NCBI GenBank assembly: GCA_964035545.1
Contig: OZ037768.1
Span: forward strand, 8,154,741 to 8,218,740
DNA: 64,000 nt
DNA from: Bugula neritina
Lineage: Eukaryota > Animalia > Bryozoa
Direction of reading: 5' to 3'
In this document: one piece after another, positions 26,401 to 32,400 of the stretch
How positions within the stretch are numbered: position 1 is the first letter of the stretch
Layout: every line of letters starts with the position of its first letter
Notes under the pieces: model-generated
What the model was told of the DNA's origin: nothing
Databases searched by the model: none
The model's input: only the letters and a program-made list of their open reading frames with translations
Translations under genes and position numbers: made by a program

Positions 26401-29400
26401 TACTTTAAAGTGATAAAATAGTCACATTCTATACTACGGAAAGTTTGCTTTCTCCAACTATATGAAAACTCATTTTAATTAACATTGCATTAGGGTTTTT
26501 ATAAAAATTACTACATAACTTTTAAACAATTTGATAATAAAAATACATAATTAAAACTACGTTATGTAAGATTTGCTCACTGAGCATAAATTCACAAAGT
26601 TAATTCATTTCATTAGTTAATACCTCATCAAGTTGAAAATATACTTTGTCTTTGCACAGACCATGAAAAAATAAAGCAATATTTTTGCTGAGGAGGTTTA
26701 ATGAAAGTTGTCTGCTCTAAATTGTGAGTTAGTGCTGCTTTTCTGTGTGATTGCTCTGCTGCTCAAGCACCAGCTTACCATGTCCATTGGGTCAAATTGC
26801 TGAGAGAAAATTTACAATTTGTAAAGGACGGGGCTAATGCTGCTGGTGCAGTGGGGTTAAATTGGTTTACTAGCATTAGTATTATGAAACCACTCTTCAT
26901 GTGTTCACACTGTGTGATGCAAAATATTGTCACCATCAGGAATTACTTTTATCTTTGCATATGTTACTGTTATTTTTGTAATTTAATGTAATTGCAGCTT
27001 TTTCCCTTATCTGGTAAAAACCTAATTTTGTTTTGCAGATTGTATCGTGGGTTGTCTCCCCGCAGTTCCTCCTGGCATCTGATCAGAAGTTTTCCCAGAT
27101 TGATACAGACATGGATGGTCTGGTGAATGGAGTAGAAGTGAGAGATGTGCTCCTGCAGAGTGGCCTTCCCCAACAAACACTAGCCTCCATCTGGTATATT
27201 TTTGTCATCCAGTAGCAGCTCCTTCAACTCTATGCTTTACAACAATAAACCTAATATGTTCAATCCCCTCGGCTATCCTCTATACTTTTTCTTAAATGAA
27301 AATTGAAAAAAAATTTGTTTCAAGTGCTTTTTTCCATTACGATTAACTTGTATTTAATGCCATTTATTTCTCTAACTCATATTACATTTACATTCATTTT
27401 AGGGGGTTGTGTGATATTCGCAACAATGGTTTTTTAAACAAAGAGCAGTTTGCTCTTGCTCAGTGGTTAATAGAAGAGAAGCGAATGAGAGGGAAAGACC
27501 CGCCCCCTCAACTGTCTCCTGATATGATACCACTGAGTCTAAGGGGTGCAGACAACTCTATTCAGGTAACCATCTGCGTACTCATTTATCATTCGCTGTA
27601 AGCACTTCTGACTCTGTTACATAAATGAGTATCTAAAATCTCAAGTAATGATAATATAATTATATTTATTGTAGGCTATAGCAGTTATTCTATAATATTT
27701 AAAACAAATTTAACGATGAGAATAAAAAAAACTCAATACACTGAGCCTTCCTGGTATCTTGAAAACAAATTTTAGTATTCTGGAATAATATTTTGACTGT
27801 TTGGTAGTTCTATTTATATCTCTTGTCCTGACTTGTTCTGCACATCTGTATTGCGAGTGCAACTGCACAGACAATAGTAAGTATTATAGCGGCAAAGTAG
27901 AAGATATCAGGCAGCCATTTCACCACATTTATCGGCTCTCTCTCTATTCTGAACACCGCCACCAGCCACTCCTGTTGCCAACAGCTGAAATAGAATTTAT
28001 GTTAGAACTTCTTTTACTGGGGAAATAACTGCGAAAGGTGGTGCTAATAGTTTTGCTATTGTGGTGCAGTGCTCGGTCAAATATCTACTTACTGCTATCG
28101 TTAGATCAACTATATATTCAGTTTTTAGGGTACAAATGTGCCAGAAAATCTCTGATACCAGTTAGTCATTTAACATACCAAATGTGCTATAAATATTAGT
28201 AAAGGTAACAGTCACCTGTAGTAACCAATGTCGGATTTTCTAACAAGCTGGAAAGTGAGCCTCTCACTGTGATCTATATAAACACGTCCTCTGGTTTCTC
28301 TCCTCAAGCTTACCGGGTTTATCGGCGCACTTCCATTCTCCCATCTAATATTTGTTTTGCTTTCCCTGGTTCGAAGTTTGTCTCTGGAATATTTATTAAA
28401 ACTAGTTTAATAATGTAAAAATAGATTTTGTTTAGGACTTAGTGATGAAAAACTTTTCATTGAGTAACAAGGAAAAAAATTAGGGTTGTCTTACCCAACC
28501 AAATGAGTTTTCCCACAGAAGCGCTCTCCAGTCAATACACAGTGTTTCGTGTAAGGAGGTTGTTATCAATTAGTAAAGCAGTACAACTAATAAGTTACCT
28601 GGGACAGGTGAAGTTTATAGCTGTGCCTGGCTGTACATAGTGCGTCTCCCTATGAACTGTGGGTGGTAAAGGAGGCTTGGGCTCATGCACTGAGTAAGAA
28701 CCTTCCCCTTCAACTTGGTCTATCAAGTTTCCATACTTGTCGGTAACATTCCTAATAGGTGCACTTGTAGGACAGTTGGTGTAGCAGTAATCTACCAGTA
28801 CTTCGCTCTGTCGTTTTCTTATCATCTGGCAAATAGTTGCTGCATAATGACAGCTGATGTAACACAAGCTTGTGTTATGTAATAGAGATAAAGAAGGGTG
28901 GTCCAGCAGTTCAATGTTTTTTATGCAATAAACTGTAAAAGATATCATTATACCAACTAACTTTGCAAAATTTCGGTTTCCTTACCTCTATATGTTTTTC
29001 TAGTGGATAGATAGATGAAGATTTGCAAGGTAATCCACTTACAACCAGCTCTAAAGCAGCAATGTTTTCTGGACTGGTGTTAACTCCACCCATTATTTTC
29101 TAAAATAATGCGATTTTAGTTTTTATTACAAGACGTGTAATAACAGAGAAACTTATTTTAGTGTTTTATATAATAACATATATTTGCACATTAAGGTGAT
29201 ATTAGCTTGCACCATCAGGTATAACAGTTGCACACAATTATTACTTGTACATAGCAGGTTCCTAATTTCCTTCTCAATCCTACTCCATTACAAGTGCTGC
29301 ATTTTGACCATTCTGACCAAATAGTCATTATTTTTATGTTCTTATCTTCTAATTTCACTGGCTCTGCTGGCCTGGGAAGTTTTCCTTGTATCACAACCTA

Positions 29401-32400
29401 AAATATATATCCGAAGTTTTAATAAAATCATCAACAAAGTACATCTAACTTCATTTTCACACCACAATTTTTCGTTAATGTTTGTAAGAAGAAGATAGTT
29501 TAAGTGGCTCCATATTGTACTGGAGTCAACTCAAATGCTCACCAGTTTTCTTGGCTCCGCTTTGACTACCTCAAGGTAATAGAGAGCATCAATTTGATTC
29601 CTGTAGATGCAAAAGTATTGTCCGGCATGTTGTTTTTTTACACGGTCTATCAAAAGTTGTTTTTCTTCTCCCAATCGATAATTCTGCCTGCCTGAATATA
29701 AAGGTTTGTTTTTCTAAATAGTTTTAATAACATTTTATGGGGCTAATATTTACACAATTTGCTGAAACATTTATGATATTTCTCAAAAATAAAGTCAATA
29801 GCTGTAGTTAATCATTGCAGGCCTACAACTAATGGATTGAAAGCCTCAAATCTTTCTTCACCTGTTTTCACTTCTTCGGCTTTTGCTGCATTTGGTAATC
29901 GCCGATACCACTTGATTTCCATATCATCCCAAGACGTACCTGGCCTTCTGCTAAAACACATAGAACTAATTATTAATATCCTCAGTTGTGGTGCATCTAG
30001 TTGGGGATTTCCAAGGTTAATGAAATTCCACTTGAATTTCTCTCTCATGTGTTTTAGTCTGAACATGATTGCACTCATTTGTATGCAATGGTACCAAGTT
30101 GCTATTTATCTGCATTTACTTCATTTCAGACTATGATCTATTCTTGGCTACCAATAATGCCGCCAACCCATTTGGATAAAGTACAAACTATAACTTGGGT
30201 ATAACTCAACTAAATGCATGAATTCTTGTTAATCTTTGCTGCTAAGGAACCCATAGAATGTGGCTAGTTTGACATGTTTTGTATTTGGTTATGAGACTTT
30301 GACTTGCTGATACTACTACTATTCATAGCAACTTTAGCATCTGTTGGTCAATTTGCCAAGGTAATCAAATGTCATCAACTTTTTCATCTGAAGCTCTCCC
30401 AGTTTCTAAATGTTGTGGCTTCTACTACTACTACTACTACCACTACCACCACCACTACAACTACTACTACTACCACTACCACTACTACTACTTTTACTTT
30501 TACTGGCACTACCGGCATCACAATACTATTATCTATCACTTAAATACATATACAATCCAAAATAATATATACTTTTTATGGAATCACTGCCAAATGTAAA
30601 AATTGTTGATAATTACCATGCATTGCAGTTCACCTTTACATCGTCTCCCAACTGCGATATAATAGCTTGTGGAATGGCTTTTCCACGGTTAAGTTGAATT
30701 ACTTTCACTTTGTGTCTAATGCATTTCTCGTATTCTATAAATGGGTTTTCTTCGCCACTTGAGGCTGCATAAGCATGTAAACATAAACTGAGTACTATAA
30801 TGGTCTGTGAAGTAAGCTGCATAGCTTTGTGGTGTGAGTTTTGTGTAGCGTGCAATGGTGACGTAATGCTGTAGCGTGAAGTAGCACGGCCTGCTATACT
30901 TGCAAAGCATAACGCCAATTTTCTCTGTGCCTTAAGCCCTGGCCACACGATCGTGAGAATGACACGAAACTCGTGTGACGATTATTCGTGAGTTATCTTT
31001 TCGTATTGACCAGCCACATGATCGTTTAAACTAAAAGTCATTATGCCGAGATTGGTACCGCAAGTTTATATAAGTTATAAAGGAAAAATTTTCCCATTTT
31101 TGTTTTTTTTTTGGTATTTTATGTGTACATTTTTTTAGTTTTTGTTTATTGGTAAAGTTTTTAAAAACATTTTTTATGCATATAAAATTAAAAAAAAATT
31201 AACTCACTCATGCACGTAAATACAAAGCTATAAAGTTTAAGCTTCGCTGTGATTACCATGTGAATATGAATTGAATAATGCTTGCAATAGCTATTTTACG
31301 CAAAATACTTTACAGTTGCTATAAATGTAAGACTAGTAAATTGGATGCAAATAGGCATAGTAATACTACTTAATTTATGCTATTTTTGAAATTTGTAGTA
31401 ATTATTTGGCGTGCATTATATATATATATATATATATATATATATATATATATATATATATATATATATATATATATATATATATATATATATATATATA
31501 TATATATATATATATATATATATATATATATATACCACTTTGATGGCAACAAGTCATTTTTATTAGTCCGTGAATGAGTCTTGCACGAGATACAAGCAGC
31601 AGAACATTGCCAAATAGAGAAACTTAGTAGAAATGAAATAATCACTGTTGCTAAAATTCTATTGACCAATCAAAAGGTACTTATCGTCGATTGTGATTTT
31701 TCGTCCGTCGTCATCGTTGTGCACACCCAACGATGACGATTTCGTTTGAATTCCCTCAAATTTTCTCGTACGAATGTTTTTTTCGTGTCAAATAGACGAT
31801 TTCGTGTGATTCTCACGATCGTGTGGCCAGGGCTTTAGGTCTGGACACACTTCAGCATTATTCTTGTGTATGTTAAAGCCATGAATATGTTTAAAACTGT
31901 TGGAGCTGCAGAAATTTTTAAGCTTTTCAGAGTTATCTCCTTTGGACTGAAAAATAAAAAAAAGAACAGCTTTTTCAAATCATCTAACTTCTACAATGCA
32001 CAAGCATGTATTGAAATATGTTCATACTGTTGTTTTTTTCTTTGTAGCTCAGTTGGTATAATATCAAGTTAAAATTAATTTTTGGGTTGAAAAGAATCAT
32101 TTTCATGAAAAATGCCTTAATATGTCAATATTTATGAGCTCAATTCATTTATGGATTTAGTTTCTTTAAAACCAGATTCCTAACTGCTAAAACTGTCCAT
32201 CTATTCAATTTGTTATCAAACATTTTTTCTATGTAATTGCTGAGTTTTCTGTGTATGCTGACCACCTGAAAGCTTTTTCTGGTCAACCCCAGCACCAATT
32301 GCAATAAAAATTTTTATGGAAATTGTATGCAAATTCACAATGCTATTAAAGTGTGTCTAGACCTATAATGTTTAGGAATGTGGGAGTTGTCTGAACAACA

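Follow-up and report, generated by a model that had tools for sequence, protein, structure and literature searches.

An antisense FAM187 gene within an EPS15 intron of the bryozoan Bugula neritina, and the same nest in Gastropoda, Hymenoptera, and Lepidoptera

A long intron of EPS15 in the bryozoan Bugula neritina carries a series of open segments on its minus strand, which raises the questions of whether these make up an intact gene, to which family such a gene belongs, and whether its place within EPS15 is peculiar to this animal. The window analyzed was the whole stretch of 64,000 nucleotides (nt) at positions 8,154,741 to 8,218,740 of contig OZ037768.1 (GenBank assembly GCA_964035545.1), and window positions are counted from its first letter. 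An initial annotation, made from the letters of the window, had joined the segments into a gene for a FAM187A-like membrane protein with immunoglobulin-like (Ig) domains. The segments very probably represent an intact coding gene that selection has maintained, the bryozoan ortholog of FAM187, with a likely sperm-surface role by orthology and a nested position that is probably ancestral at least to protostomes. The gene is ordinary in kind, belonging to a family that is widely annotated in invertebrates and was functionally explained in 2026; the new point is the antisense nest, which is conserved across phyla.

Between 30822 and 27810 of the minus strand, eight open segments could be identified, and all introns between them begin with GT and end with AG (Table 1). 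The exons of 206, 89, 149, 153, 114, 227, 168, and 175 nt add up to 1281 nt, equal to 426 codons and a stop. From exon 1 to exon 8, the number of bases carried in from the preceding exon is 0, 2, 1, 0, 0, 0, 2, and 2, and no in-frame stops are found within the exons. Two junctions split a codon for a conserved residue: TG|C at the junction of exons 1 and 2 restores the invariant second Cys of a C-x-x-C motif, and AG|C at the junction of exons 7 and 8 gives the Ser of a Y-S-C-W motif. Across the junction of exons 5 and 6, the spacing from PC(R/K)S to R-x-S-E is 15 residues, the same as in every homolog read. Exon sums, borders, and frames therefore agree with the annotation of eight antisense exons having canonical splice sites, consistent phases, and a product of 426 amino acids. 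Exon 6 is present as a single copy in the AT-rich 216-Mb genome of B. neritina.

Two other splice sites were considered and rejected. The exon 6 acceptor at 28826/28825 is in frame and lies 14 nt beyond a tatgcag at 28839; use of the latter as the acceptor is out of frame and introduces 6 stops. A GTAAGT within exon 5 could serve as a donor, and in that case the conserved G-x-P-C-(R/K)-S motif falls downstream of it. Three further features were seen in and around the gene. Intron 1 contains a GTA/GTG-type trinucleotide tract (window 30410-30540), a long (TA)n microsatellite occupies 31416-31538, ∼600 nt upstream of the ATG, and an out-of-frame ATG at 30910 of the minus strand, which precedes the start codon by 88 nt, opens a frame of 64 codons. 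This frame would be an upstream open reading frame (ORF) if transcription begins further upstream.

To place the gene in a family, homology searches were made exon by exon. A word search with exon 6 identified a single exon-sized ORF of 61 residues in another species, which shows 67% identity and ends at the same exon border, and a profile of these two sequences identified 44 relatives at an E value of ≤1e-3 among 1.84 billion protein representatives. Full-length relatives (∼380 to 460 residues) are matched at the same relative place. Among them are proteins named FAM187A from Centruroides (E value, 2e-11), Haliotis (E value, 4e-8), Stegodyphus, Paramacrobiotus, Biomphalaria, Lineus, Diachasma, Dinothrombium, Patella, Priapulus, and Saccostrea, together with unnamed or hypothetical proteins from Owenia, Oedothorax, Cotesia, Phaedon, Euphydryas, Solemya, Elysia, Batillaria, and Ramazzottius. 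The best full-length exon 6 relative, P0004 (UniParc UPI00078A09B9; 556 amino acids), has two copies of the part that extends from the middle region to the second Ig domain (residues ∼183-349 and ∼390-556), which is probably an artifact of assembly or gene modeling, or else a tandem duplication.

The remaining exons could be assigned to the same family. When nine relatives were searched against the 64-kb window by TBLASTN, only collinear minus-strand matches were found, nearly all of them in exons (best E value, 4e-14). A family profile built from 12 full-length homologs, none of them from the window, was then run on 2035 stop-free pieces from all six frames, and the eight exon-bearing pieces ranked as the top 8 of the 2035, in collinear order and spanning positions 31 to 428 of 431. 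Strong matches were obtained for exon 3 (profile 109-157; E value, 1.3e-10), exon 4 (162-210; 5e-15), exon 6 (246-322; 6e-24), and exon 7 (325-374; 9e-11); exons 1 and 8 matched at 31-75 and 374-428, and exons 2 (74-114) and 5 (213-239) weakly. Those invariant and near-invariant motif residues of the family alignment that were traced by eye are all found in the exon translations.

The Ig parts of the family profile also match unrelated Ig proteins in PDB, and no FAM187 entry appeared among the PDB profile matches, just generic Ig proteins. For the middle region (profile ∼160-300, encoded by exons 4 to 6), no match was identified among solved PDB structures. As this region supplied the query of the large protein search, the family assignment is not based on generic Ig similarity. 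When the family alignment and the Owenia middle region were used in word searches aimed at vertebrate members, only protostome matches were returned, and neither a vertebrate nor a nematode FAM187 was present among the 44 exon 6 profile relatives or the word-search matches.

The predicted protein shows the layout proposed by the initial annotation, namely a signal peptide, an Ig domain, a motif-bearing segment, a second Ig domain, a transmembrane (TM) helix, and a short tail; the order was borne out by the family profile and by simple Kyte-Doolittle hydropathy, which was used for the signal peptide and TM calls. Along the 431-position profile, the first Ig domain covers 31-157, the middle region 162-322, and the second Ig domain 325-395, giving two Ig domains around a middle of ∼140 residues. 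The Ig signatures C...W...G-x-Y-x-C and C-P...W...D-x-x-x-Y-S-C-W can be read in the exon translations. At the N terminus, a Met-Gln start is followed by an 11-residue hydrophobic core (mean hydropathy, 2.2) and the small residues A-Y-A-A-S, as in a signal peptide. Exon 8 encodes a 19-residue segment with a mean hydropathy of 2.82, aligned with the TM helix of the homologs, and then 12 residues rich in R/K before the stop, consistent with a single TM helix and a short tail. An AlphaFold2 model of the Owenia homolog consists of an Ig domain, a beta-rich middle, a second Ig domain, and a TM helix (mean predicted local distance difference test score, 79.9). A Foldseek search of PDB with this model identified only multi-Ig adhesion proteins at low TM-scores, and the fold neighbors, among them contactin, sidekick, and DSCAM, are adhesion ectodomains of a generic kind.

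Of the segment that had been described as thrombospondin type 1 (TSP1)-like, the motif stands and the domain does not. W-S-x-W-S-x-C-x-x-C...G-x-C is present in exon 4 and nearly invariant in the alignment of homologs, and exon 4 matched Pfam TSP_1 (PF00090) with 17.5 bits against a cutoff of 21.6, over profile positions 3-22 of 49 only. Ig_3 was matched at an E value of ≤0.01 by 12 of the 12 full-length homologs and TSP_1 by only 2, and assignment to a TSP1 domain was therefore rejected in favor of a likeness at the motif level. In single-exon Pfam searches, Ig_3 and ig on exon 3 were likewise below threshold. The segment shares with PF00090 the motif W-S-x-W-S-x-C-x-x-C-G...G-x-C and, in the homolog model, its short beta-stranded form.

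A second sequence allowed the effect of selection to be considered. L003, an ENA metagenome scaffold whose name begins with BRYA16, is bryozoan-like and carries exons 1 to 6 of an ortholog in the same order and with the same borders. It has the same Met-Gln start, the same phase-2 donor after exon 1, and the same signal peptide layout. Protein identity per exon ranges from 36 to 66%, with E values of 4.5e-5 for exon 2 and 3e-7 for exon 5, and nucleotide similarity is detectable in exon 6 only. Third positions are 36 to 54% identical. Across the six exon pairs, which were summed unjoined, the proportion of nonsynonymous differences (pN) is 0.325 and that of synonymous differences (pS) 0.79, which is beyond saturation and so yields no numerical ratio of substitution rates (dN/dS). 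The claim that the gene is functional, for which dN/dS had been proposed as a check, is hence supported by conservation under saturated synonymous divergence, and the check itself gave these two proportions only. Purifying selection is indicated because open frames and exon borders have outlasted the complete turnover of silent sites and introns.

The host gene was identified from its plus-strand exons, which match in order the EPS15 exons of Haliotis, Euphydryas, and Diachasma. The exon preceding the nest matches the Diachasma host exon with an E value of 1e-19 and also the host exons of Haliotis and Euphydryas. One host exon gave an EH match of 20.9 bits against 22 for a fragment, and the assignment to an EPS15-type gene, with three EH domains and a coiled coil, comes from the ordered matches to Diachasma, whose 1026-residue host product contains three EH domains and a coiled-coil family. 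The host exon borders and these cross-species matches confirm the antisense position of the gene within EPS15. The intron that holds it is, as first described, far longer than the other host introns in the window, which measure ∼120 to 1300 nt as judged from the host exon matches. The nested unit is wholly intronic: ∼1.9 kb of the intron separate its ATG from the host exon that follows, and the AATAAA beyond its stop codon falls within the intron as well.

Table 1. Coordinates of the nested gene and its host in the window, and of FAM187 genes in other genomes
Feature	Sequence	Position	Strand	Description
Exon 1	Window	30822-30617	-	ATG, signal-peptide-like hydrophobic core, start of Ig domain 1
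Exon 2	Window	29950-29862	-	Middle of Ig domain 1, invariant Trp
Exon 3	Window	29691-29543	-	End of Ig domain 1, G-x-Y-x-C motif
Exon 4	Window	29397-29245	-	Family-typical W-S-x-W-S-x-C-x-x-C...G-x-C segment (TSP1-like motif)
Exon 5	Window	29099-28986	-	Middle region, G-x-P-C-(R/K)-S motif
Exon 6	Window	28825-28599	-	Family-specific Cys-rich region, linker, first strand of Ig domain 2
Exon 7	Window	28383-28216	-	Core of Ig domain 2
Exon 8	Window	27984-27810	-	End of Ig domain 2, TM helix, 12-residue basic tail, TAG at 27812-27810
AATAAA, likely polyadenylation signal	Window	27670-27665	-	Consensus match; 140 nt past stop, within host intron
Host EPS15 intron	Window	27566-32688	+	GT at 27566, AG at 32687-32688; 5123 nt, holds whole nested gene
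Host exon before nest	Window	27403-27565	+	Second half of third EH domain of EPS15
Host exon after nest	Window	32689-32750	+	Start of EPS15 coiled coil
Haliotis asinina FAM187	L002	10001-14806	+	Inside 818-residue minus-strand gene
Haliotis host exons	L002	16108-15950, 8035-7898	-	Matches to EH3 exon and coiled-coil exon, respectively
Haliotis host exon, weak candidate	L002	8970-8908		Match to small post-nest host exon
Diachasma alloeum FAM187	L010	10001-13371	+	NCBI-annotated inside 1026-residue minus-strand gene (4236-18082) with three EH domains
Diachasma flanking host exons	L010	14077-13922, 9318-9178	-	Matches to the same two window exons
Euphydryas editha FAM187	L006	10001-16730	+	EH exons end at 17231; minus-strand gene 1-9407 has EPS15 coiled-coil exons
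Second bryozoan-like scaffold, FAM187	L003	ATG at 1093		Post-nest host exon 484-422, opposite strand, upstream of exon 1
Priapulus FAM187	L007	10365-11731		Two coding blocks; neighbors folliculin and folate receptor
Lineus FAM187	L008	10001-11128		Single coding exon
Solemya FAM187	L005	10001-14148		Three coding blocks

Whether the nest is conserved in other genomes was then examined, and FAM187 was found antisense within EPS15 in Haliotis, Diachasma, Euphydryas, and the L003 scaffold, as the initial annotation had suggested checking. The same host, the same intron after the EH3 exon, and the same orientation are thus found in Bryozoa, Gastropoda, Hymenoptera, and Lepidoptera, and inheritance from a protostome ancestor is the best explanation for a nest common to four such groups. 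This placement behind the EH3 exon is probably an arrangement shared by ancestry, of protostome and perhaps bilaterian age. To our knowledge, nested gene pairs that are shared across phyla are uncommon, and a search of the available literature identified no paper combining FAM187 with EPS15, nor EPS15 with "nested gene." In Euphydryas, EPS15 is apparently split by annotation into a 398-residue EH model (L006:17174-26730) and a 748-residue coiled-coil model (L006:1-9407), one on each side of the nested FAM187 gene. The nest could serve as a practical marker for FAM187 genes missed by annotators or for split host genes, as in Euphydryas.

No nesting was identified within 10 kb of FAM187 in Priapulus, Lineus, Ramazzottius, or Solemya. 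In Centruroides no EPS15 host gene was found within 10 kb of FAM187, and this genome was counted as neither nested nor unnested. For the nested copies of Haliotis and of the window, the exon count is at least five or six. Because three of the four unnested copies (those of Lineus, Priapulus, and Solemya) are intron-poor, their gene structures suggest an escape from the nest by retroposition. That a functional tie of FAM187 to EPS15 has preserved the nest for more than half a billion years is rather doubtful; speculatively, the expression of FAM187 could be gated by germ line chromatin or by transcription of the host intron in the antisense direction. If a tie of this kind were true, lineages would have left the nest mainly by way of retrocopies, as may be the case in these three genomes. 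The EPS15/FAM187 pair offers a clean case for asking whether function or inertia keeps genes nested.

The family had been described as poorly characterized, and this no longer holds, since two 2026 preprints show that it is an essential sperm fertilization factor in the mouse, zebrafish, and Caenorhabditis elegans. The defining features of FAM187 proteins are a signal peptide, a pair of Ig-like domains, a TM segment, and a short tail, and FAM187A is a core subunit of a sperm complex, SPARK, together with TMEM81-IZUMO1-SPACA6, DCST1/2, and TMDD1 (bioRxiv 10.64898/2026.05.13.724128). Male mice and zebrafish lacking FAM187A are sterile, their motile sperm failing at binding or fusion (bioRxiv 10.64898/2026.05.13.724128). 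In C. elegans, the single gene spe-40 has a sperm-specific role in fertilization by genetics (bioRxiv 10.64898/2026.05.14.723898). The window gene would be transcribed from its own putative promoter within the 1.9 kb between the ATG and the next host exon, and its transcript would end at its own putative poly(A) signal inside the EPS15 intron, running against the direction of the host. The product is predicted to be a type I membrane protein of 426 codons with a signal peptide, an Ig domain, a Cys-rich W-S-x-W-S middle, a second Ig domain, a TM helix, and a 12-residue tail. By orthology, its likely place is the sperm surface, where it would serve adhesion or assembly as a subunit of the fertilization machinery, together with DCST1/2-type proteins.

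Some points weigh against this interpretation. The homology searches were made with single exons rather than with the whole spliced protein, the predicted signal peptide and TM helix come from hydropathy, we infer the promoter, poly(A) site, and tissue of the nested gene, and the link to the founding members in vertebrates and C. elegans would follow from database names and preprints. Invertebrate proteins called FAM187A could be automatic mislabels of a different two-Ig family that resembles FAM187. The names do come from annotation pipelines, homology was compared among protostome members, and the Ig parts of the profile match other Ig proteins as noted. However, this is extremely improbable, as the search started from the family-specific middle region, for which solved structures gave no match, and the matches are single and at the same relative place except in P0032 (1167 amino acids) and P0038 (3829 amino acids), which are long and matched in multiple stretches. 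Every other exon 6 profile relative with a descriptive family name is a FAM187A, in keeping with the name first proposed, and the SPARK preprint, which describes the family across bilaterians, reached nematode and other bilaterian members by BLAST from human FAM187A at an E value of <0.001 (bioRxiv 10.64898/2026.05.13.724128). It is also very improbable that the locus is a silent or recently dead relic, unexpressed and open by chance or inertia. The out-of-frame upstream ATG at 30910 and the fact that bryozoan colonies also propagate asexually could be cited for a relic; however, the eight exons are open, with canonical splice sites and all checked invariant residues, and the L003 ortholog retains the same exons at saturated synonymous divergence, with pN well under pS.

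A real FAM187 gene could instead work outside fertilization, its product serving, for instance, as an Ig receptor in immunity or in general cell adhesion. A study of Ciona robusta treats FAM187A as an immune-responsive Ig gene, its transcript being modulated by zymosan in juveniles, which would allow a role outside gametes, and the structural matches of the family are generic adhesion ectodomains. Such a role is nonetheless clearly unlikely, because loss of function in the worm, zebrafish, and mouse causes a sperm-specific fertilization defect with sperm otherwise normal, and because the gene is single copy in B. neritina, so that the conserved role would have no other carrier. An intact FAM187 gene with a conserved role at the sperm surface thus remains the preferred reading, and by it the bryozoan ortholog adds a phylum to one of the few fertilization factors that worms, fish, and mammals have in common. 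The initial annotation had expected an invertebrate member to help date the family; little is gained in this respect, as annotated members already exist in many phyla and the family is known from across Bilateria.

Among the closest known genes are NCBI-annotated invertebrate ones such as Diachasma alloeum XP_015108276.1 and Haliotis asinina XP_067677395.1, which are 30 to 42% identical in the family-specific exon and have the invariant motifs and the antisense EPS15 nest in common with the window gene. Annotated invertebrate FAM187A genes differ in exon number; one case is Haliotis, in which exons 5 and 6 form a single exon. Vertebrate FAM187A and FAM187B, compared by description only, resemble the window gene in architecture and in proportions, including the middle of ∼140 residues. 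No nesting within EPS15 is known for the vertebrate genes. In human FAM187A, the Ig-like domains lie at 48-129 and 273-361 and the TM segment at 382-405 (bioRxiv 10.64898/2026.05.13.724128). SPE-40 (Y37E11AR.7) of C. elegans is likewise the product of a single, multiexon invertebrate FAM187 gene and a type I Ig membrane protein, but it has one recognizable Ig-like domain and its gene lies on chromosome IV and is not reported to be nested (bioRxiv 10.64898/2026.05.14.723898). As SPE-40 is not among the 44 exon 6 relatives, it appears to have diverged further than the members from lophotrochozoans and arthropods.

Exons of other gamete-fusion genes were also found in the B. neritina genome. DC_STAMP-family exons are present at three loci (C3:13158372-13159484, C3:13917407-13917523, and C3:4981413-4981562), and a HAP2-GCS1 exon at C1:27832934-27833116 (L011:4941-5249:+) scored 40.5 bits against a Pfam cutoff of 27.4, over profile positions 252-305 of 515. 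From these matches, HAP2, DCST-type, and FAM187 genes seem to occur together in this genome. Both HAP2 and DCST1/2 are found in 180 species (18.6%) (SPARK preprint, bioRxiv 10.64898/2026.05.13.724128), and species with proven HAP2 are described as being without clear FAM187 orthologs (spe-40 preprint, bioRxiv 10.64898/2026.05.14.723898). With DC_STAMP-type exons and one HAP2-type exon beside the FAM187 gene, two proposed gamete-fusion systems may coexist in one animal.

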